Position numbers and translations under genes: made by a program. A stretch of DNA of 63,562 bases, the filler included, from Pelomyxa schiedti (Eukaryota; Protista; Evosea): assembly GCA_020536535.1 (NCBI GenBank). It is 3 parts of 3 records of this genome, joined end to end, with 100 filler letters (N's around TTAATTAATTAA, not from the genome) between each part and the next. Parts side by side here need not be neighbours in the genome. Positions count along the whole stretch, not along the records: positions 1 to 26,594 come from JAHLWZ010000695.1; 2 more parts are not named here. One strand, 5' to 3'. This document shows positions 2,333 through 25,900 of this stretch, piece after piece. Within the stretch, counting starts at the first letter, position 1. Each line of letters begins with the position of its first letter. The notes beneath the pieces are model-generated. The model had not been told where the DNA came from and did no database searches. It was given only the letters and a program-made list of their open reading frames with translations.

Positions 2333-5103
2333 ATGATGGTGACCACCAGGGAAAGAGGCAACGAGGTTGGCCAGGCACGTTGTGATGTGCGTGGCCACGT
2401 CGTCGTCCGTGCCCGTGTTCGGGGTGGTGTTGATTGCACGACAATCCGTGAAGGCGATCTCGGCACATGTCATCAGCATGTGCTCAATGACCGGGAATGA
2501 CGGCCGGTTGCTCTCTGTTGGAGAGGAGAGAGATTGAGTGTGAGAATGGGTGGGATTCAATCTGCGTGGTGTGCACTTTGTGTGGGTGTGTGCGTGGTGC
2601 AATGTGGGTGGAGTTTTTTTTTTTTTGCCTGGAGAGAGGGCCAAAAACAAACCAAGGATTGAGAGGCAGGACTCAACAACGAGAGAGAACTGGCCAACGC
2701 ACACGCGGTTGACGTTGTTCATCTTGGGCTCAGATCGCAACGCGGAAATGATTGCGATCCTCCGGCTGAGACACTCCGCAACGGGAAAGTCTCCGGCTTC
2801 AGGATCACGACAAATCCGATCCAACTCTGTGTGGGGAGTCAGAGAGAGAGAGAGAGATTGGTACAACGAAACCGGCAACTTCAGGAGGTGACAGTGAAGC
2901 TCTCTGTGCCATCAGGAACTCGTGAACCTGAATGGCAGCCCTTGGGACCGCGGCCGCTGGAGCGGTGCCTTGAAGAAGTTCACTCAACAAAACCGCAAAC
3001 TCCCACATGTCTCCTGGGATAGTAAGTGTCAGAATATGCCAACATAATTTACATTCCAGTTTCCAATCCAACCTTTAATGCCATAGTGCTGAGTGTGCAT
3101 CTGTGGAGACAGGTAAATCGGTGTGCCGGCCCCTTTGGTGAAAGTGCCACGAGGACCACATCCTCCTGCAAGAGCTCTTGACATGCCTTCAGTTCATCAT
3201 TAGAGGATGGAATGGTTGGTTGGGTGTCTGACGGATAATACAAACCGAAATCAGCAACTTTGGGAGTTCCACACGAATCCAGGAGCACATTGTTGCTGCT
3301 CAGATCTCTGTGCATGTAATTCCTCCTGCATGTTGTGGTTGTTGTGGCACAACAACATAAGCTCAAAAACCAAGTAAAGATCAATAAACAAACACAATCA
3401 CGAACATGTGAAGTGCAGTCATTCCTTTGGCAATTCCTGATGAGACTGCCACAACATCCACAAATGTCAGACTTTTCTGGATTGCGTGTGTGTGCAGTGT
3501 GAGAAAATAGTGGGGCTGTGGGCAAACAAGCATGATGAAGGAGCTGCCTGAGGCTCAATTCCATGAGTTCAGAAACTATCCATAGTGACCCTGTGCTCGT
3601 GGTGCACGTTCCAAGGCATCTCACAATGTTTGGGTGCCGCAAACTTGATGAGAGCTGTTTGTGGTAGGTTATGGTGAGCTTGAGTGAAAGATATTTTTGA
3701 AATGTGTGTGGGTATGTAGCACACACCAGAGCTTCTTTCTGAAATTGTGTGATGTTGAACTCGGATTGTATGCTTTCATGAAGTGATTTCACTGCCACAA
3801 ATGTTGTTGTGGTTTCTGATGACGTTGCAAAGGTAGTTGGTGCTGTGTTGTTGCGAAGGAAGAAGGAGCACTTGAAAACGGTTCCGTACGATCCAACTCC
3901 AAGGGTGGAAACAACTTTCAAGTCTTTCTCTTGAATTGTCATGCTTGATTTGATTCGCACTTGGAGGGACACAACTCTGTTTGTGCTGCCGTTGACTTGT
4001 TGTTGTTGAATTTCTTCCAAGGTTCTGGATGGATCACTCAACAGTTCCTCCACTCCAGAGCTGTTATCTGAACCAACAATGAAAATGAGTTGTTGAGTTG
4101 GTTCAACTCCAAACTTCCTTGAGATGATAAGCTTCACAACCTGTGTATTTTGGTTGGTTTGGTGTGTTTTTTCCCCCCGAAAGCAGCCAGTGCGCAGCAA
4201 ATCACACAAACAACGAGAAATGGAACATGAAAATACCATTTGAAGAGGGCAGAGGCCGCACACAATTTCATTGAAAGAGGGGAGATCCTCAAACGCAATC
4301 TTGACTTGTGATCGCTTGCAGTTCTTGTTGTTGTTGCTGTTTTCAGGAAGAAGGAAGCTGCTCCACGGGCCTTCTCCCTGCTCAACATGTGACATCACGT
4401 GATTCGTGTCTGCATTGACAGTTAACATGTGCAAGGTTGGTTGGGAAAAGGGGGTGTTGTGGAAACAAACGGTGCTGCATATCATGAAGCCTTTGCTCGT
4501 CAGATTCTCTTTGGTCACAATAGATCTTCAGGTTCTTGGCAACTTCTTCCTCCAGTGTGGAGATCATTTCCATCAGCTCTTTTTTTTTTGGGGGAATAAG
4601 GTGGGGACAGAGAGAGAAGAAAGGAGGCTAAAACCCTTGTTCCTTGCATGCAGTTCCCTGACTTCTTCTTTTTGAAAACACAAAGTGTTGGCGTCCACAC
4701 GTGGGCACTCAAGCAACGCCACCACAACACCAATGTGGTGATAAACACAGGTGGTGACCAGTGGGCACCCCTTGTTCACATCCACATCGGGTCTCTCCAC
4801 CAGCATCCTCACCACTGCCTCGTTGCCCCCACAAGCAGCGACGCACAGTGGCGTGTCACCATCCCTGTCGGTTTTGTTCGGGTCGATCGGGGGGCTGCGT
4901 GATGCACCCACATCAAGGAGCTGCCAAACAAGCGACTCGTGCCCGTAAGAGCACGCAAAGTGGAGCATGGTCCAACCGTGACCATCGATGGGGGTGTTGA
5001 TGTCCCACGTGGGCGACGGCAGCTCGGGCATGACGCCGCTCCGGCACGCAACACGCATGGCCTCGTACTGCTGATCCTCCGACAGTGCTGTTGTCATCGC
5101 CAT
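2333..5103 (-). CDS. Ankyrin/coiled-coil/ubiquitin-like/TKL kinase, family copy 2 (3' end in gap)
   Basis: Ankyrin repeats (GWTMLHFAC, GDTPLCVAA) at 4690-5103, a UBL-like segment VVKLIISRKFGVEPTQQLIF, and kinase motifs GVGSYG, VAVK, HRDLSSNN, KVADFG. Confidence 0.85.
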
Positions 5104-5221: not shown

Positions 5222-8200
5222 TCAGCTTCTGTGGTCTGAGAACGATGCAGCGATGTTTGCGAGGCACCTGGTGATGTGCCCCGTCACCTCGTTCGTGTTG
5301 TTGGTGGTGGTCGCGGTGCCCGTTGTTGTTGCGGGTCGGGAATTTGTGAACACGATCTCGGCACATGTCATCAACACTTTGTCAATCGCCGNNNNNNNNN
5401 NNNNNNNNNNNNNNNNNNNNNNNNNNNNNNNNNNNNNNNNNNNNNNNNNNNNNNNNNNNNNNNNNNNNNNNNNNNNNNNNNNNNNNNNNNNGTGATGTGC
5501 CCCGTCACCTCGTTCGTGTTGTTGGTGGTGGTCGCGGTGCCCGTTGTTGTTGCGGGTCGGGAATTTGTGAACACGATCTCGGCACATGTCATCAACACTT
5601 TGTCAATCGCCGGGAATGACGGCCGGTCGATCTCTGCGTGTTTGTGTTTGTGTGGAGTCAGAGACTGCGGAATGCGGAAAGAAAAACGAACCGAGGATGG
5701 AGAGGCAGGACTCAACAACGAGAGAGAACAGACCCACGCACGCGCGGGGCACGTTGTTGTTGTTCATCTTGGGATCACATCGCAACGCGGAGATGATTGC
5801 GATCCTACGGCCGAGGCACTCAGCAACGGGAATGTCGCCAACGTCATCACAAAGCCAGTCGACTTCTGTGCGTTTTATGTGTGAGTCAGAGGGAGGCCAG
5901 GTTTTTGTATTGTTGACAAGCAAACCGGCAATTTCTGGAGGTGAGAGCGACGCTCTCTGGAGCCTCATAAATTCTGTCACTTGGGCACTGGACTTGGGCG
6001 TATTTACCGATGGTACTTCGCGTTGAAGAAGTTCACTCAACAAGACTGAAAACTCCCACATGTCTCCTTTTTTTTTTTTTAATTATATGTGCATGGTGCG
6101 GAATTAATGTTGAGTGATATAACATTAACATCCACATACCTTGAATTCTGTAGTGCCCGGTGTGCATCTGTGGTGGCAAGTAAATCGGTGTTCCAGCTCC
6201 ATTTGTAAAACTCCCAGTCGGAGCTGGTTTACTCCAACCACAGCCGATTTGGTTCTGGATGGCCCTCGACACTCCTTCATTTTCAGTTATTTTGAGTTAC
6301 ATATGTGTGCCGTTGTGGAAAGTACCAAAGTCAGTGATTTTTGGAGTTCCATGAGAATCCAAGAGAACATTGTTGCTGCTCAGGTCCCGGTGCATGATAT
6401 TCCTCCTGTGTTTTGGGTTGGATTTTTTTTTTTTTTTTATTGGGAAAAGTTAATTGGTGGTTATTTAAAAGAGTGCAAAAGAAGAAACAGAAATTGAAAC
6501 CTGTGAAGTGCGGACATTCCTTTCGCAATTCCTGATGAAACTGCAACAACTTCCATGAAGGTCAAATCTTTCTAATTGTGTGGAATATGTCACATTGACA
6601 TTTTGAGTGAGACCAACAAAAAAAAAATAAAAGCGGGAGGAGAAAGAGGGAGCAAAAAAACAAACATGATGAAGGAGTTGCCTGAGGCTCAATTCCATGA
6701 GTTCAGAGACGATCCAGAGTGACCCTGTGCTCGTGATGCACGTTCCAAGGCATCTCACAATGTTTGGGTGCCTCAACCTTGATGAAATCTGTGGGGGTGC
6801 GTGTTGGTGGGGTGGTGAGTTGATGAACGAATTTGTTTTCAAACACAGCATCATAGAGAGAAACTCTCTCACTCACCAGAGCTTCCTGCTGAAATCGTGT
6901 GATGTTGGACTCTGATTTGATAATTTCGTGAAGTGCTTTCACTGCCACGAATGAGGTTGTTTCTGATGATGATGAGGAAGAAGTAGCCGCATTGTGAAGG
7001 AAGGAACACTTGAAAACGGTTCCATACGATCCAACTCCAAGTGTGGAAACAACTTTCAGGTCTTTCTCTTGTATTGTGGTGGTTGATTTGATTCGAACCT
7101 TGATTTGAACAACATTTGTGTTGCTGTTGTTGTCTTGTTGTTGCTGTTGAATATCCTCCAAAGTTCTGGAGGAATCGGTCAACAGTTCCTCGGAGTTGTT
7201 GTTTTCTGGATCAGCAGTGAAAATGACTTGTTGAGTTGGTTCAACTCCGAACTTCCGTGAGATGATGATCTTCACCGCCTGCGTTCGGTTGTTTGTTTCC
7301 CACACAGAAACCAGTGAGTAAAATGAAAAAACACGGGAAACGGGGGAACTTCAAGGGAGGAACCCAGTCGCATACCATTTGAAGAGGACAGAAGGCACAC
7401 ACAATTTCATCAAAAGAGGGAAGATCCTCAAAATCAATCCTGATTTGTGATCGCTTGCAGCAGTTGTTGTTGTTGTCGTCGTAGTTTTCAGAAAGAATGT
7501 TGCACCACGTTCCGCCTTCTCCTTGTTCAACATGTGAAATCACGTGATTCGTATCTGTATTGCAAAGAAGAGTGTGGCATTGTGTTATAATGTTGTCGTT
7601 TGAGAAAGCTGGATGTTGTTCCCACACATACAGTGCCGGAGATCACGAAATCTTTGTTTGTTGTCAGTTTCTCTTTCTTCATAGAATTGTTTCATTTCTT
7701 GAAATCTTTGTTTATCAACTTCTCTGCTTTTTCTTTCATCATGGAGAAGATTCAAGTTCTTTACGTTTTCATCCTCCAATTGCGTGATTCGTGCCTTCAG
7801 TTCTGTGATCTCATCTTTTGAACACAAAGAGTGAGGTTCACAGTGTTTGAATTTGATTTGAAGAGGGGGGTTTCTCTCAACTTATCTGCTGCTTTGCTGT
7901 GATTTCCCCGGAGTCTCTTTCTTGTTTCTCAACGAAGTTATTGTTGATGATGTCACCACCTTCCTCAAGAGCTTTGCTGGTATTTGGTGTTGTTGCCGCA
8001 GTCGTTGTTGTTGGTTGTGGTGAGGTGGATGACAATGATGACGTATTGTCTGAAGCCGAGGGTGGTTGTGGTTGCTGTTCTTGTGGTGGTGTTTCAGGAG
8101 GGGAGAGTATCTGCGGAATTGTTGATGTGGCTGGACACATGGCTTGAAACAGTTTCTGAACTGCCTCATTTTTCCAGCAGCACTCAAGTGCTGTTTTTCC

Positions 8201-10173
8201 AGTCTTGTTCTGTGCCAACAGTAAAATTACATTACATATCATCGAACGGGGCAGAAAAGAACCTTGATATGAGTGTTAATTCCCACACAGGATAGAAGTT
8301 GTCTCACAATTACAACATTTCCTTTTCTGCAAGCAAGGTGAAGCGCGGTCTGAAAGAGATGAAAAAATTAAGTTTTGTGTCAAGAAATTAATACAGTAAA
8401 GAAACTGAAGGGGAACGTACATCACCCTTTCATTTGCAAGGAAAACCCCAGAAAAGAAATAAGAGGAAGACAATAACAACAAGAAAAAAACTCGTACTTC
8501 CTGAAAAAAAGTAAGAAACGAAGAACCAAGGTGGGAGCTCTTACAATCTACAAAATAGACATAAATCCCAAAAAAGTTAGAACAGAAAGCTGCAAGTATT
8601 TACTTACTCCCTTTTGAAAGGTATCGTAATGTTGTTGAATAAAAATAGGTGATAGAAATGAAATGATAAATTGTCCAGAGAATTTGAAGAAAGGAGAAAG
8701 TGAAGTAAGTACAAAGTTGATAGATCACGGAAATTGGGTTGGGATGGGTAGCTACACACTTCCTAAACACACCATGCAAGTAAGAATTGGTGAATCATGC
8801 AAATGGGGTTGGGGCAGTGGGGGGGGTGAGTTACACACAATCTAAGGACGCCACACAGAGCAAATCATGGAGTGAAATTGAGGCAAGTCAGAGAAATTGA
8901 ACAACGCAAAAGGGTGGGGGGCAGTAACACACATACTAACCAACAGAGTGAAGAAAGGAGAGAAGCAAGTAAGAAATTGTACAAAAAGAGTGAAGCGAGG
9001 AGTGAAATTGGAGCAAGTAAGAAACTGATAAAAAGCAATGCAAGAGGTGAGGATACACACATCCTAATTTCACGCCACACAGTGAGATTGAGGTGAGTCA
9101 GAGAAATGGGGGAAAAAGCAATAAAAGGGTTGGAAGTACAGTACATCCAGCTAATTAGGTGCGAAATTTAAACAAGTAAGAAACTGATGAGCAACGTGGA
9201 GGAATGGGGTGGGGGGTAACACACTCCCTGAGCAAAGCAAAAAAATTGAAACAAGTCAGAGAAGTCGATGAAGAAAATGATGAACAATGCGAAAAGGGGA
9301 AGAATTTGAGGAATCATGTATGACATGACACAGAGTGAAGCAAGTGTGAGTTTGAACAAGCATGCAAAAAGGGATTGGAGTACACACATTCTAAGCACGC
9401 CAGGGTGAATCAGGGATTGAAATTGATGCAAGGATAAAAATTGAAGCAAGTCAGCGATATTGATGAATAACACAAAAAAAGGGTTGGTCAATTACACACT
9501 TCCTAAATAAGCCACAGGGTGAAACAACGAGATAAATTGAACCAAGTCAGAGAATTGGTGAATAATGCAAAAAAGGGGATAGAGAAATGGCAGTACATAC
9601 AGGCACACCCTGGGGGAAAGGATTACAGTTTTAAGAGGTAAACATAATCAGGAAGGTATATTACACACCATCTGTGAAGTGAAGATACACACAAGTTAGT
9701 GAGTGAGGACTAATTCAAGATTAGAGGACAAAAATCAAAACAAACCTGGGCATTGACATCGATGTTCATTGACAACAAGAACTCAACACCCTTCTGGCTC
9801 TGTGCCCATGTAGCCACATGCAACGCTGTCTGTGTGTGCATGTGTGCAAAAACCGAAAAAAATACATTAGAAAATGCCCAAAAACCGAATTCCCTATTAA
9901 CTTTAAATTATGAACTCTTTCAAAAAAAAAAAAAAAAAGAATATATCGGAGCACTGGTTTCCCTTTCGCACGCGCACACACCAGTCTTTGATGTTTGTTG
10001 TTTATTGAGTTGAGGATGCCGGGGTCGCGATCCAGCAGCACCTGCAGTGACCCGACGTTGATGGCGGAGTATTCGGCCGCAGAGAACCACCGGCTGGGCC
10101 CAACCCGTGCCTGCTGGGGTCCCCTGTGCGGCGACGAAGTATTCGTTGTTGTTGTAGCTTGTGACTGCCCCAT
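5222..10173 (-). CDS. Ankyrin/coiled-coil/ubiquitin-like/TKL kinase, family copy 3, with MG start and microexon array
   Basis: Exon 1 10173-9982 (MGQSQA...HQRL). Exon 9829-9746 (TALHVATW...DVNAQ). Microexons between 9671 and 8421. Exon 8349-8263 (TALHLACRKG...THIK). Exon from 8209 (NKTGKTALEC...). Then coiled-coil, UBL and kinase exons to TGA at 5222-5224. All ankyrin-exon junctions are phase 0 GT-AG. Confidence 0.85.
8421..9671 (-). other. Array of 14 candidate phase-0 microexons inside an ankyrin beta-hairpin
   Basis: Minus-strand AG|exon|GT in transcript order: ATG 9671-9669; GGTGTGCCT 9609-9601; GAA 9502-9500; AAT 9390-9388; GGA 9227-9225; CTGGAT 9150-9145; GAT 9063-9061; TAT 8935-8933; ATT 8841-8839; GAA 8762-8760; GGA 8610-8608; ATT 8547-8545; GAA 8500-8498; GGTGAT 8426-8421. 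All lengths are multiples of 3, none contains a stop, and the spacers are pyrimidine-rich. Confidence 0.8.
8690..9600 (-). repeat. Degenerate tandem repeat of an intron+microexon unit (about 75-110 bp)
   Basis: Recurrent plus-strand motifs (a)aattga..caagt(c/a)agagaa..., tgcaaaaa..ggg and tacacac-NNN-ct. On the minus strand these read as donor GTGTGT, CCC-TTTTGCA tract, CTGAC/CTTAC branch-like motif and AG. Confidence 0.7.
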
Positions 10174-10622
10174 GGAGGTGTGGTGCAATGGAGATGAGTA
10201 TGTGGGAGCTAACACAATGTGATCATGAATGTGTGAGACCCCACTGGGTGGTGGGCCCACCCATCAAAGAACTCGAGCGTGCAGTCCTTTCTGTTGTCTT
10301 ACTGTCTGATCTTCACCCAGAGGAGTACTGATTGAGATCTCAAGTCTTTGGCCCTTTGGAGAAATCGATTTTTTTTTTTATTTCTTTTGAAGGGACACGT
10401 TGCGTTGGCACTTCGTCGTTGTTACCCCCACCCCCAGTCTTGACATCGGTACCACGTCCCATAATTGGCCACCGTTCTCTACTACTCAATCGCACAAACC
10501 CAACCAACCGACGCTTACTTGAACACGAAACATAATTATCGTTGTAAACAAGACCACGCACCATCTCACTCACATAAAGAAAAAAAACCCAAGGGAAAGT
10601 CTATATCAGTGGAACCACGGCA

Positions 10623-22905: not shown

Positions 22906-25900
22906 ATGACAACACAACGGCAGTACAAGGCCATGAGTGATGCGTGCCAGCGTGGCACCATGCCCGAGTTGCCACCGTCACCCACGTGGGACATCAACAC
23001 CCCCATCAATGATCTTGGTAGCACCATACTTCACATTGCGTGCCGCCACGGACACGAGTCGGTTGTTGGGCAGCTCCTTGCCGTGGGTGCGTCACGCGAC
23101 CCCCCGATCGACCCAAGCAAACCCAACGGTTTTGGTGTGACGCCACTGCGTCTCGCTGCTAGTCAGGGCCACGAGGCAGTGGTGAGGATGTTGGTGGCAA
23201 GACCTGATGTGGATGTGAACAAGGAGTGCCCACTGGCCAGCGCATGTCGGTGTCGCCACATGGGTGTTGTGGTGGCGTTGCTTGAGTGCCCACGTGTGGA
23301 CGTCAACTTGGTGGCGAGAACAACACAAGTATACCAGTCTATTAATGGTCAAACAGCACTGCACGTTGCTTGTGAGGAGGGATTCGTGGAAGGGGTGAAG
23401 GTTCTGCTCAAAGTCAATGGAATTGACACAAACTGCAAGAACGGCAAAGGTGAAACACCACTTGATGTGGCAACAAGAAAGAACCACACTAATATCTGCA
23501 ACCTCTTGATGGATCACAACGCGAGCAGAATTGTGCAACCCTCAAAGCCCACCTTCCCACCACCACAACAACAAGCACCACCCACAGCAACAACAACGAC
23601 GGCAGCAAGAAACAGGGAAATCACTACTGAAACACAGCAGCAGAGTGGTAACCAAACCCTCCAAATTTCAAATATCAACGTGCACGCACCTCACTCACAC
23701 CATCTTTATGTTCAAAAGAAGAAATCAGAGAACTGAACACACAATTGGAGGGTGAAAATGCAAAGAACCTGAAGCTTCTCCATGATGGAAGGCAACTCAA
23801 CCAAGAAAGATTTGATGGCTCAACTGCAAAGAACCATGGTTTTTTCACCTCCTTTCTTCTCTGAAACACTTTGCACTTCTCACCCCACACCACCGTTTTC
23901 TTCAAAACGAACTCAAACATTGTGCTGAAGAAATCAAAGAACTGAAGGCACGAATCACACAACTGGAGGAAGAAAACACAAAGAACCTGAAGCTTCTCCA
24001 TGATGAAAGACAGCTCAACCAAAAAAGATTTGATGATTCAACTGCAAAGATCAAGGGTTTTAACCTCCTTTCTTCTCTCTTTGAGAACCCCACTTTTTTT
24101 CCTTCTAACGAACAAACAAAAAAGAGCTGATGGAACAGATCTCCACACTGGAGGAAGAAAGTGCCGAGAACCTGAAGATTTTTTGTGATGAAAGAGCATC
24201 TGATCAAAACCGTTTGTTTCTTCACATTCACAACACATAACTTTTTCAATCAACCAACAAGCATTGCTCTCTCTAACTGTCAATGGCAGACACGAATCAC
24301 ATGATGTCACATGTTGAACAAGGAGGCGGCACGTGGTGCAACATTCTCCCTGAAAACAATAACAACAACTGCAAATGCTTGCCAGTCAGGATTGTGTTTG
24401 AGGACCTTGCCTCTTTTGATGAAATTGTGTGTGCCTCCTGTCCTCTTCAAATGGTACGTATTAATGTTCCTTCCTCGTTGTTTGTGTGATTTGTTGCTCA
24501 CTTGGCTGTGCTTGTGTGGGAAAAAAACGTACCAACCAAATTCCCCTGCAGGTTGTGAAAATCATCATCTCAAGGAAGTTTGGAGTTGAACCGACACAAC
24601 AACTCATTTTCATTGTTGGTTCAGATAACAACTCTGGAGTGGAGGAACTGTTGAGTGATCCATCCAGAACCTTGGAAGAAATTCATCAACAACAGCAAGG
24701 CAACTGCAGCAGCACAAACAGAGTGGTTGTGTCAATTCAAGTGCGAATCAAATCAAGCATGACAATTCAAGAGAAAGACTTGAAAGTTGTTTCCACACTT
24801 GGAGTTGGATCGTATGGGACTGTTTTCAAGTGCTCCTTGTTCCTTCCCCACAACAACACAGCAGCAGCAACATCTTCCTCCTCCTCAACATCATCAGAAA
24901 TAACAACTACAACAACATCACTTGTGGCAGTGAAATCACTTCACGAAAGCATAAAATCCGAGTTCAACATCACCAGGTTTCAGCAAGAAGCTCTGGTGAG
25001 CTTGTGTGTCTGTGTGTGAGCAAGAGCTGTGTAATCGATGATCCTGCGTGTTGGAAAAAAATTTGCTCACCACATCTCCCACAGATTTCGTCGAGCTTGA
25101 GGCACCCAAACATTGTGAGATGCCTTGGAACGTGCATCACAAGCACAGGGTCACTCTGGATCGTCTCTGAACTCATGGAATTGAGCCTCAGGCAGCTCCT
25201 TCATCATGTTTGTTTGGCTCTTCATTCTCCCACACACCACCCTCGAAGTTAAACTTCTTCTTTTGACACTGACACCCACAACACACACATCAGAAAAGTT
25301 TGACATTTGTGGAAGTTGTTGCGATCTCTTCAGGAATTGCCAAAGGAATGACTGCCCTTCACTTGTTTGTGATTTCGTCTTGCCTCTTTTCAATTTATGT
25401 TTTAATTAAAGTACTGCGGTATTAACTGTGTTTAAACACAAACACACAGGAGGAATATCATGCACCGGGACCTGAGCAGCAACAACGTTCTCCTGGATTC
25501 TTGTGGAACTCCAAAAATCGCTGATTTCGGTTTTTCTCTCTCTCCATCACTTCATTCCAATTTGACGCGATCACCAAAGGAGTGTCAAGAGCCAGCGTCG
25601 GAAATGCTCTCCCTGGTGGACATAGACCAACAGCACTTGGTACTTTCACCAACGGTGCAGGAACGCCGATTTACCTGCCACCACAGATGCACTCTCGTCA
25701 CTACGGAATTCAAGGTTGGTGGTGAATTCTCTAATTCCGGTTGTTGTTCTGACACTGATGATCGCAGGAGACATGTGGGAGTTTGCAGTTTTGTTGAGTG
25801 AACTTCTGCAGGGCACCGTACCGGAGGTCACACTCCCCAAGTCCTTTGCCAAAATGGGTGAGTTTATGAAGCTCCAGAGGTCATCGCTGTCGTCCCCTGA

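Follow-up and report, generated by a model that had tools for sequence, protein, structure and literature searches.

A tandem array of candidate single-codon exons with hypervariable codons in an ankyrin-repeat gene family of Pelomyxa schiedti

Introduction

How is a polypeptide continued across a break of 1396 nt that falls within a single ankyrin repeat? This question is raised by a gene of the anaerobic amoeba Pelomyxa schiedti which is annotated in part as Pelo_8891 and lies on the minus strand of a stretch of 63,562 nt (assembly GCA_020536535.1; hereafter the window), positions 1 to 26,594 of which come from record JAHLWZ010000695.1. The gene combines ankyrin-repeat exons with a protein-kinase 3' part, and the gap between two of its ankyrin exons (8350..9745, minus strand) holds an array that can be read as 14 exons of 3, 6, or 9 nt set among 15 short introns, each 44-160 nt long. 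The original prediction for this locus had interpreted these units as micro-exons from which any subset could be spliced into the binding hairpin of an ankyrin-repeat kinase. The genome of P. schiedti comprises 52.4 Mb and contains 7.4 introns per gene, of which 98.4% are of the GT-AG type (PMC8887013), and introns in this organism must therefore be short. Here, the array is analyzed in the window and in its paralogs, and the possible ways in which it could be spliced are weighed against each other.

The gap in the ankyrin repeat and the units that fill it

The gap has GT at its start and AG at its end, both flanking exons are in phase 0 at their junction with it, and an in-frame extension of either exon cannot supply the missing hairpin residues. 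The upstream flanking exon (9746..9829, minus strand) encodes 28 residues (TALHVATW...NIDVNAQ), corresponds to positions 3-31 of the Pfam Ank profile and is kept in 21 paralogs. The downstream flanking exon (8263..8349, minus strand) encodes 29 residues (TALHLACRKGN...INTHIK), and its counterpart in the paralog model P0002 begins at profile position 4. A direct join of the two exons would therefore lack five hairpin residues; profile positions 32-33 and 1-3 are absent between them, and these are the positions that the micro-exons of short paralogs fill. Sequence and profile thereby bear out the original prediction of two phase-0 flanks separated by a hairpin gap of about five residues. The region agrees with an ankyrin repeat (PF00023 / PF12796), which is defined by 33 residues with T-x-L-H, helices and a D/N-x-x-G-x hairpin. 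On Pelo_8891 itself the exon-level Pfam scores are just below the cut-offs (Ank_2, 26.2 vs 27.3 bits; Ank, 19.3 vs 21.1), and the paralog model P0006 has precomputed assignments to PF00023, PF12796, and PF13857. The other introns of the window gene measure 53-152 nt, and its next hairpin, NKTGK, is encoded contiguously.

All 14 units bounded by AG and GT that had been predicted were found on the minus strand. Eleven have 3 nt, two have 6 nt and one has 9 nt, none contains a stop, and in their order they encode M, GVP, E, N, G, LD, D, Y, I, E, G, I, E, and GD. The donor is GTGTGT in eight units and of the GTA type in the other six. Micro-exon 1 (ATG, M; 9669..9671) is found in the context CACAG|ATG|GTGTGT, and its acceptor is used in the annotated Pelo_8891 model. 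Micro-exon 2 (GGTGTGCCT, GVP; 9601..9609) has the donor GTATGT and corresponds to homologous 9-nt exons in paralogs, which encode, for example, GAP, GEP, GKP, or GKR. The variable micro-exons follow, namely GAA (E; 9500..9502, TTTAG|GAA|GTGTGT), AAT (N; 9388..9390, CTTAG|AAT|GTGTGT), GGA (G; 9225..9227, CTCAG|GGA|GTGTGT), CTGGAT (LD; 9145..9150, ATTAG|CTGGAT|GTACTG), GAT (D; 9061..9063, ATTAG|GAT|GTGTGT), TAT (Y; 8933..8935, GTTAG|TAT|GTGTGT), ATT (I; 8839..8841, CTTAG|ATT|GTGTGT), and a second GAA (E; 8760..8762, TTTAG|GAA|GTGTGT). The LD unit is the weakest candidate, having a purine-rich acceptor context and an atypical donor, and was missed by a stricter chain search. The array ends with the conserved terminal micro-exons GGA (G; 8608..8610, donor GTAAGT), ATT (I; 8545..8547, donor GTAAGA), GAA (E; 8498..8500, donor GTACGA), and GGTGAT (GD; 8421..8426), the last of which gives the hairpin glycine directly before TALH. 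Together these four units add up to G-I-E-G-D, the five residues missing from the repeat.

A comparison with shuffled controls, which the original prediction had envisaged, was run on the window gap. AG-N3-GT occurs 16 times in the gap vs 1.96 +/- 1.40 times (maximum 9) in 1000 dinucleotide shuffles. The spacings AG-N0-GT, AG-N2-GT, AG-N4-GT, and AG-N8-GT do not occur in the gap at all, and the counts of 5-9 for AG-N1-GT, AG-N5-GT, and AG-N7-GT for the most part reflect the GT repeat within GTGTGT donors. The motif AGNNNGTGTGT is present in 8 copies in the gap, when 1.65 would be expected for the entire window. These counts exceed chance, and the view is supported that the units look like genuine splice-flanked single-codon exons. 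Units 3-10 are degenerate copies of a repeat of ~100 nt, and Tandem Repeats Finder made no call on the window array because the copies are too diverged. The spacers have the predicted lengths of 44-160 nt, but the regularity attributed to them holds just roughly.

As a separate observation, contigs of two runs from the same sample as the assembly, whose type is unrecorded and which were judged to be DNA, replace 108 nt by 18 letters at 9472-9581. This variant form has about one repeat unit fewer, and the lost segment includes the micro-exon E of 9500-9502. An allele, a paralog or an artefact of amplification could each account for the variant, which would represent array-length polymorphism if real.

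Arrays at the same position throughout a gene family

Paralogs were compared in a set of 21 from which both flanking exons had been recovered. The same phase-0 gap (...DVNxQ to TALHLAC...) is filled by an array in 21/21. The gaps, 358-2869 nt long and all with GT at the start and AG at the end, can be divided without remainder into introns (44-209 nt) and exons of 3, 6, or 9 nt, with 4 to 29 micro-exons per paralog. Consecutive exons of at most 36 nt in multiples of three, separated by GT-AG introns, are the architecture of micro-exon genes (MEGs), and it is found in the window and in its paralogs alike. Part of the array, searched as DNA against the genome of P. schiedti, had 96 matches, which form tandem arrays on ~20 contigs, and a stringent junction pattern matched the genome 127 times vs 2 times for the control pattern. 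In the fetched loci AG-N3-GTGTGT is present 207 times, other spacings of 0-9 nt 5-20 times each, and AG-N0-GTGTGT 9 times. Using the downstream exon as query, 28 genome matches with E<0.001 were obtained; all 28 begin at its first residue and 25 span the full 87 nt. The family therefore comprises at least 21 paralogs, and ~28 when judged by the downstream exon. In the search of the 52 Mb genome, all arrays with assembled flanks belong to this ankyrin family and occupy the same intron position. Tandem clusters of 2-4 family members per contig are seen on C530, C361, C418, C328, and C1194; some of the clustered members are 2.5-5 kb apart and some look truncated (C328).

The first micro-exon is ATT in 15/21 paralogs and GAT or AAT in three short ones. 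Its context, CACAG|NNT|GTGTGT, is the same as that of the variable units, and yet its codon is conserved. The last ~300 nt of the array were aligned for 18 paralogs. In this terminal alignment the blocks AG GGA GTAAGT, AG ATT GTA, CAG GAA GTA, AAG GGTGAT GTA, and the final CAG are conserved, and so are branch-like motifs (TTCTAAC, CTTACC, TTGACAC) at the usual distance 5' of each AG, including the CTAAC motif in the intron after the terminal GGA. Indels are confined to the introns and none falls within a micro-exon. Terminal ATT is ATT in most aligned paralogs and ACT in two, the terminal GAA position is occupied by GAA, GAG, CAA, or GCA, and GGTGAT is essentially invariant (GGCGAT once; GGCGAT, GGTGAA, or GGTGAT in the short paralogs), in keeping with the predicted role of the last unit in supplying the conserved glycine (GD-TALH). 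This is the pattern expected if four short introns were spliced independently and the micro-exons between them were coding. The conservation of the first and terminal micro-exons in such a context argues against a mutational hotspot at the junctions.

In the shortest arrays the hairpin can be read directly. On contig C361, a paralog with a 358-nt gap (L038) gives NLQ | D | H | F | GD | TALH, a paralog on C1160 with a 370-nt gap (L037) gives NFQ | D | A | D | GE | TALH, and a second paralog on C361 with a 495-nt gap (L016) gives NAK | N | N | N | A | GD | TALH. Only with inclusion of every 3-nt exon would L038 and L037 have exactly the canonical D-x-x-G-x hairpin, and the 28 residues of the upstream exon together with the five micro-exon residues would then make up a 33-residue repeat. 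The placement of the units in the ankyrin hairpin, as originally predicted, is upheld by these paralogs, which assemble D-x-x-G-x from such exons. L016 (C361:20000-29000) also contains, at about 300-315 of its gap, a unit around a TAT triplet in which AG has become GG and GT has become AT; this unit, with both splice sites lost, looks like the relic of a micro-exon deleted by the fusion of two introns. Long paralogs follow the plan I-(GxP)-{NNT}n-G-I-E/Q-GD. In the closest pair, from C361 and C1194, the flanking exons are 97.7% identical but the arrays differ, reading I-GET-T-Y-R-C-Y-R-R-G-H-Y-G-I-E-GD in C361 and I-VEP-H-L-Y-L-L-G-F-G-I-E-GD in C1194.

Hypervariable codons between conserved splice signals

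A first alignment of 123 units yielded a consensus of ~101 nt that starts with GTGTGTAAC..., has an internal CTGAC and a pyrimidine-rich tail, and ends with TTTAG, after which the triplet comes. Conservation is 80-98% at most positions, whereas triplet positions 1 and 2 carry 0.05 and 0.2 bits, respectively, and position 3 is T in 80%. A second search, with a hidden Markov model (HMM) of 90 nt around the junction, was made to avoid circularity and gave 251 matches. Among these, AG and GT are 100% conserved, and 244/247 complete junctions are intact. Conservation amounts to 89-99% at donor positions +3 to +8 and averages 76% in the remaining columns. The most frequent base reaches 32% at triplet position 1 and 43% at position 2, position 3 is T in 82%, and 27 distinct triplets were counted among the junctions found by the HMM. 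Only one stop triplet (TGA, on C219) is present when 7.0 would be expected from the position frequencies. Triplets of the type NGT, which would extend the GT run and so displace the GTGTGT donor by 2 nt, are strongly underrepresented (6/51 vs 219/238, Fisher p = 8e-31, a value inflated by the relatedness of the units by descent). Within the units internal AG occurs at 0.17 of expectation, and almost none is found in the last 40 nt. The donors of the variable units have T at -1 and GTGTGT, whereas the conserved terminal exons have donors of the GTAAGT or GTATGA type. One of the exceptions to intact junctions is in a paralog (L027, C418:30600-36781; match 402-483) in which a 1-nt donor deletion gives TAG|TATTGT|GTAACT, where the next GT would define an in-frame exon of 6 nt.

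Rates of change were compared in 215 junction pairs that had no more than 3 mismatches in 80 flank bases; such close, binned pairs were used since ungapped flank divergences within arrays are inflated by indels. Of these pairs, 66% differ at position 1, 51% at position 2, and 4.7% at position 3, as compared to 2.8% per site in the flanks, corresponding to Jukes-Cantor distances of 1.59, 0.85, and 0.048 for the three positions and of 0.028 for the flanks. Compared to the introns, change at codon positions 1-2 is ~30-fold faster. These two positions are the non-synonymous ones of an NNT codon when it is read in the frame set by the flanking exons, and the largely synonymous position 3 behaves like intron; this is not the similar divergence at all positions, devoid of preserved signals, by which a neutral minisatellite would be recognized. 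The flanks are not frozen, as array-specific variants exist (GTGTGTAACA in C687/C1936, GTGTGTAAAC in C361/C1194, and CAG...GTGCGT in C161/C1119). The lack of indels in the triplets carries little information, as indels are found at local rates of just 0-5% in the alignment of the units. A diversification system, as the original prediction had it, fits the invariant AG and GT and the ~30-fold faster codon change across the family, but the diversity seen is germline diversity between paralogs and not diversity among the products of one gene.

Other origins of the variable triplets were considered and rejected. A hotspot of the deaminase type does not agree with the occurrence of all substitution types at position 1, the dominance of A<->T at position 2 and the conserved first micro-exon. 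Transposon-like insertion with a 3-bp target duplication left no clear signature, adjacent identical triplets being found in 26/211 cases (12%) vs 9% expected. A generic satellite or introner was discarded as every copy is in this family and at this position.

A chain of short introns as the favoured explanation

On balance, we consider it probable that the array is a chain of 15 short introns whose removal joins single codons into the mRNA, and that the middle codons diversify while the array grows by tandem duplication. Taken separately, it is very probable that the conserved frame micro-exons are used and likely that at least some of the variable codons reach the mRNA, and it is doubtful that micro-exons are included combinatorially. 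The sequences show the anatomy of the array, its homology across the family, conserved splice signals, a conserved frame and hypervariable positions 1-2, and its splicing pattern, its translation and its function are inferred. Introns occupy both hairpin-flanking positions elsewhere in the window gene, which is the basis for supposing an ancestral hairpin with introns on both sides. Tandem duplication and unequal crossing-over of a segment consisting of intron and codon would have split this hairpin and then lengthened it codon by codon, each duplication adding one more codon to the loop; all array introns are homologous, the diverged terminal ones included (repeat families D8, D9). The resulting layout would be a conserved frame, made up of the first exon and GGA|ATT|GAA|GGTGAT, around a middle of 0 to ~24 units of a ~98-nt intron and an NNT codon. 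In a genome that is dense in short introns, each ~100-nt intron could be recognized and removed singly, and the single codons joined in the mRNA would give a loop of about 10-35 residues. Selection would keep splice sites and frame, conserve the framework codons and diversify the middle codons, so that each paralog would have a distinct loop.

Several points weigh against a chain of spliced single codons. In the one RNA run examined, a small single-cell run, depth is zero across 7437-10600, which includes the array. No protein spanning the array was found by word-index protein searches and an exhaustive HMMER search, which returned only P. schiedti gene models. All annotated family models examined (P0001-P0008, P0010, P0016-P0020, P0023, P0026, and P0028) break at the array, where they have a stop inside it, start after it or read intron as exon. 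Pelo_8891 (P0001) ends with ...DVNAQ-M-VCNIPS*, that is, the first short intron is removed and the donor of micro-exon 1 is then read through; models of paralogs begin with 'MY-TALHLAC...' at an ATG within GGTGATGTA, and P0006 and P0020 translate intron sequence. The broken family models accordingly comprise N-terminal stubs of 87-136 aa ending in read-through junk and C-terminal models starting from the spurious 'MY'. As the repeat units are related by descent, intact sites, stops and NGT triplets cannot be counted as independent observations. The variable units may be weaker splice sites. A 3-nt exon is too small for both of its splice sites to be recognized at once, and stepwise removal of the introns would therefore be needed. 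Ankyrin-hairpin loops of 20-35 residues that consist mostly of Y, I, L, F, G, D, H, and P would be unusual. Finally, one match on C219 (L028, C219:10000-13450; match 1203-1285) reads CAG|TGA|GTGTGT and contains the sole in-frame stop in ~250 triplets. The same bases of this unit form a GTGAGT donor that overlaps the acceptor.

Might less of the array be coding than the chain requires? The frame alone could be translated (G|I|E|GD and perhaps the first exon), with the variable ~100-nt repeat a skipped intronic minisatellite or a set of decoy or noise sites, and G-I-E-G-D by itself would indeed restore the 33-residue repeat. The stronger, consensus-like donors and conserved CTAAC of the terminal exons, compared to T|GTGTGT in the variable units, the minisatellite-like variation of array length among near-identical paralogs and the zero depth of RNA over the array also speak for this possibility. 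Nevertheless, it is rather unlikely, as it leaves unexplained why 244 of 247 variable junctions are intact, why positions 1-2 evolve ~30-fold faster, and why stops and NGT are rare; moreover, short paralogs need units of the GTGTGT type as exons for D-x-x-G-x, and an intron of 1-3 kb would be far longer than is usual for this genome. Still less would be coding if the whole gap were one ordinary long intron with a neutral satellite, functionless AG|NNN|GT and an ankyrin repeat devoid of its hairpin. The variable motifs are part of the repeat consensus, so that AG and GT are shared by descent in most copies, and neither RNA nor annotation supports the micro-exons. However, the diverged terminal units keep splice signals, branch motifs and codons in 18 paralogs while their introns gather indels, short paralogs yield canonical hairpins, hypervariability is limited to two in-frame bases, and the satellite is present at no other kind of locus, all of which makes a neutral satellite very improbable. 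That the tandem introns each release a functional small RNA, as in the small nucleolar RNA (snoRNA) hosts SNORD115/116, and that the tiny exons are filler is the least credible proposal; tandem intron-encoded snoRNA arrays are a known arrangement and would account for conserved introns around a varying 'exon', but the arrays have no match in Rfam, the units do not fold better than shuffled sequence (z = +0.5 to +1.6), box C/D motifs are absent on the sense strand, and the arrays are in frame within a protein domain whose surrounding coding frame is conserved.

The model of the original prediction differs from the favoured chain in another respect, since the micro-exons would be cassettes that are included stochastically or in a regulated way, giving many isoforms per gene at codon resolution. 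All selection signals that fit the chain fit this model as well. As all exons are multiples of three and the flanks are in phase 0, any subset would keep the frame; the near-identical introns could allow any donor to pair with any downstream acceptor, and the variable donors look weaker than those of the frame. Against cassettes stands the expectation that nearest-site pairing dominates when short introns are recognized singly, and the diversity demonstrated is germline, between paralogs; we therefore regard the cassette model as unlikely. Beyond it, one may imagine a splice-built hypervariable loop in which ~28 germline cassettes, held diverse by positive selection, and a stochastic or regulated choice of isoforms with different loop lengths and residues would provide a recognition repertoire on kinase or ubiquitin-ligase effectors, serving at codon resolution in something like innate immunity or in the sensing of prey or symbionts by an anaerobic amoeba. 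This joint proposal is improbable.

Comparison with known systems

Schistosome MEGs have exons of 3-81 bp (PMC10526429) and vary in multigene families (PMC4015677). They share with the P. schiedti array the runs of very short exons in multiples of three, any subset of which is in frame, and the link to protein variation in multigene families. Between MEG exons, however, which mostly have 6-36 nt, there are long introns of up to 5 kb that are unrelated to each other, whereas the array consists almost entirely of single codons and mutually copied introns of ~100 nt. The small, secreted, disordered proteins of MEGs are encoded almost wholly by such exons, whereas the array forms one loop of a folded ankyrin repeat in an intracellular-type multidomain signalling protein, so that the restriction of MEGs to small secreted proteins does not apply. 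Alternative splicing of MEGs has been demonstrated, while that of the array is hypothetical. Isolated 3-nt exons exist in human MAP4K5, RPS24, and cytohesin-1, which proves that a spliceosome can include an exon of 3 nt, and RPS24 has three consecutive micro-exons of 3, 18, and 22 bp (PMC8632122, PMC12207440, PMC6314551). These micro-exons are single or few, conserved and unrepeated, in contrast to up to 29 micro-exons with homologous introns and hypervariable codons in P. schiedti.

Duplication in tandem of a genomic segment that has splice signals at its borders is known to create new introns (Rogers model; potato RdRp case; PMC4974935), and the homology of all array introns fits this mode of gain. 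Similarly to such cases, duplication of an intron together with the first codon would add an intron and a 3-nt exon in one step. Rogers-type cases, however, are single events that leave the protein unchanged, whereas up to ~25 rounds, each adding one codon, would have occurred in P. schiedti. Fungal NLR-like (STAND) proteins with ANK, WD40, or TPR domains have near-identical repeats that undergo concerted evolution by unequal crossing-over, and a few codons of their binding surface are hypervariable under positive selection and coupled to signalling domains. Their unit is a whole coding repeat of 33-42 residues, whereas the unit in P. schiedti is an intron and one codon, and neither NACHT nor NB-ARC domains were seen in the P. 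schiedti family. Introners are also many near-identical introns, but they are dispersed over unrelated genes, whereas the 96 DNA matches and the 127 pattern matches fall in arrays without exception, and all arrays with assembled flanks are at one position in one family. Recursive splice sites are likewise neighbouring 3' and 5' sites within a long gap, but have zero bases between AG and GT; in the loci the 3-nt spacing prevails with 207 AG-N3-GTGTGT vs 9 AG-N0-GTGTGT, and AG-N0-GT is absent from the window gap. Missing Rfam matches and folding z values of +0.5 to +1.6 also set the arrays apart from snoRNA hosts. In the literature, isolated 3-nt exons, MEGs, intron gain by duplication and tandem snoRNA introns were found but no array of up to 29 single-codon exons, and the P. 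schiedti genome paper does not mention the array (PMC8887013).

The array would represent a MEG-like architecture that is unrecorded in the literature found, its importance depending on confirmation by transcripts. If its codons are spliced in, it would be the longest run of single-codon exons for which any record was found, and the spliceosome would be able to process dozens of 3-nt exons serially. It would also be a live case of iterated intron gain by tandem duplication in which coding sequence grows by single codons, and a new route to a hypervariable loop in which introns would be the recombination scaffold and single codons the units of selection. The array would explain the split or truncated state of ~28 P. 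schiedti gene models; standard gene predictors and aligners miss genes with such micro-exon arrays.

Effector domains and other features of the window

Exon 1 of the gene (9982..10173, minus strand) encodes an N-terminal cap and a first ankyrin-like repeat ending with ...NNKHQRL, equal to residues 1-64 of Pelo_8891. It is followed by an ordinary intron of 152 nt (9830..9981, minus strand; donor GTGTGT, acceptor CACAG), which is removed in the annotated model. Another ordinary intron, of 53 nt (8210..8262, minus strand), precedes the hairpin NKTGK, and its homolog is spliced in the models P0002 and P0005 of two paralogs. In its 3' part (5603..7305, minus strand), the gene has expressed exons for a protein kinase of the TKL type, as indicated by Pfam and by RNA contigs. 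The latter are identical to the window at 5705-5865 and 7084-7277 and have a 94-nt intron (6572-6665) spliced out. Matches to Pfam PK_Tyr_Ser-Thr are weak and at fragment level in the window gene and significant in the paralog models P0004 and P0007. One paralog on C530 (L010, C530:193000-202999; 6113-7765) has the ankyrin module with its array followed by two SAM domains and a U-box and lacks the kinase; the module with the hypervariable loop is therefore combined with different effector domains. Of the ubiquitin-like (UBL)-kinase effector that had been predicted, the TKL-type kinase is retained for the window gene, but Pfam finds no UBL in 7084-7305, and one paralog has SAM and U-box instead. 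A role as a receptor or in non-self recognition would be speculative.

Other ankyrin-repeat genes are located in the window at 23023-23439 (plus strand) and 4573-5103 (minus strand), with a repeat of the TALHVACEEGF...NGIDTNCK type and an ankyrin ORF of 176 aa; their repeats are contiguous and free of micro-exon arrays. At ~5400-5500 the assembly has a gap (run of N) with near-identical duplicated sequence on both sides, recognizable as repeated ORF text, and this gap probably represents an artefact of scaffolding, located within or directly behind the 3' end of the kinase gene.

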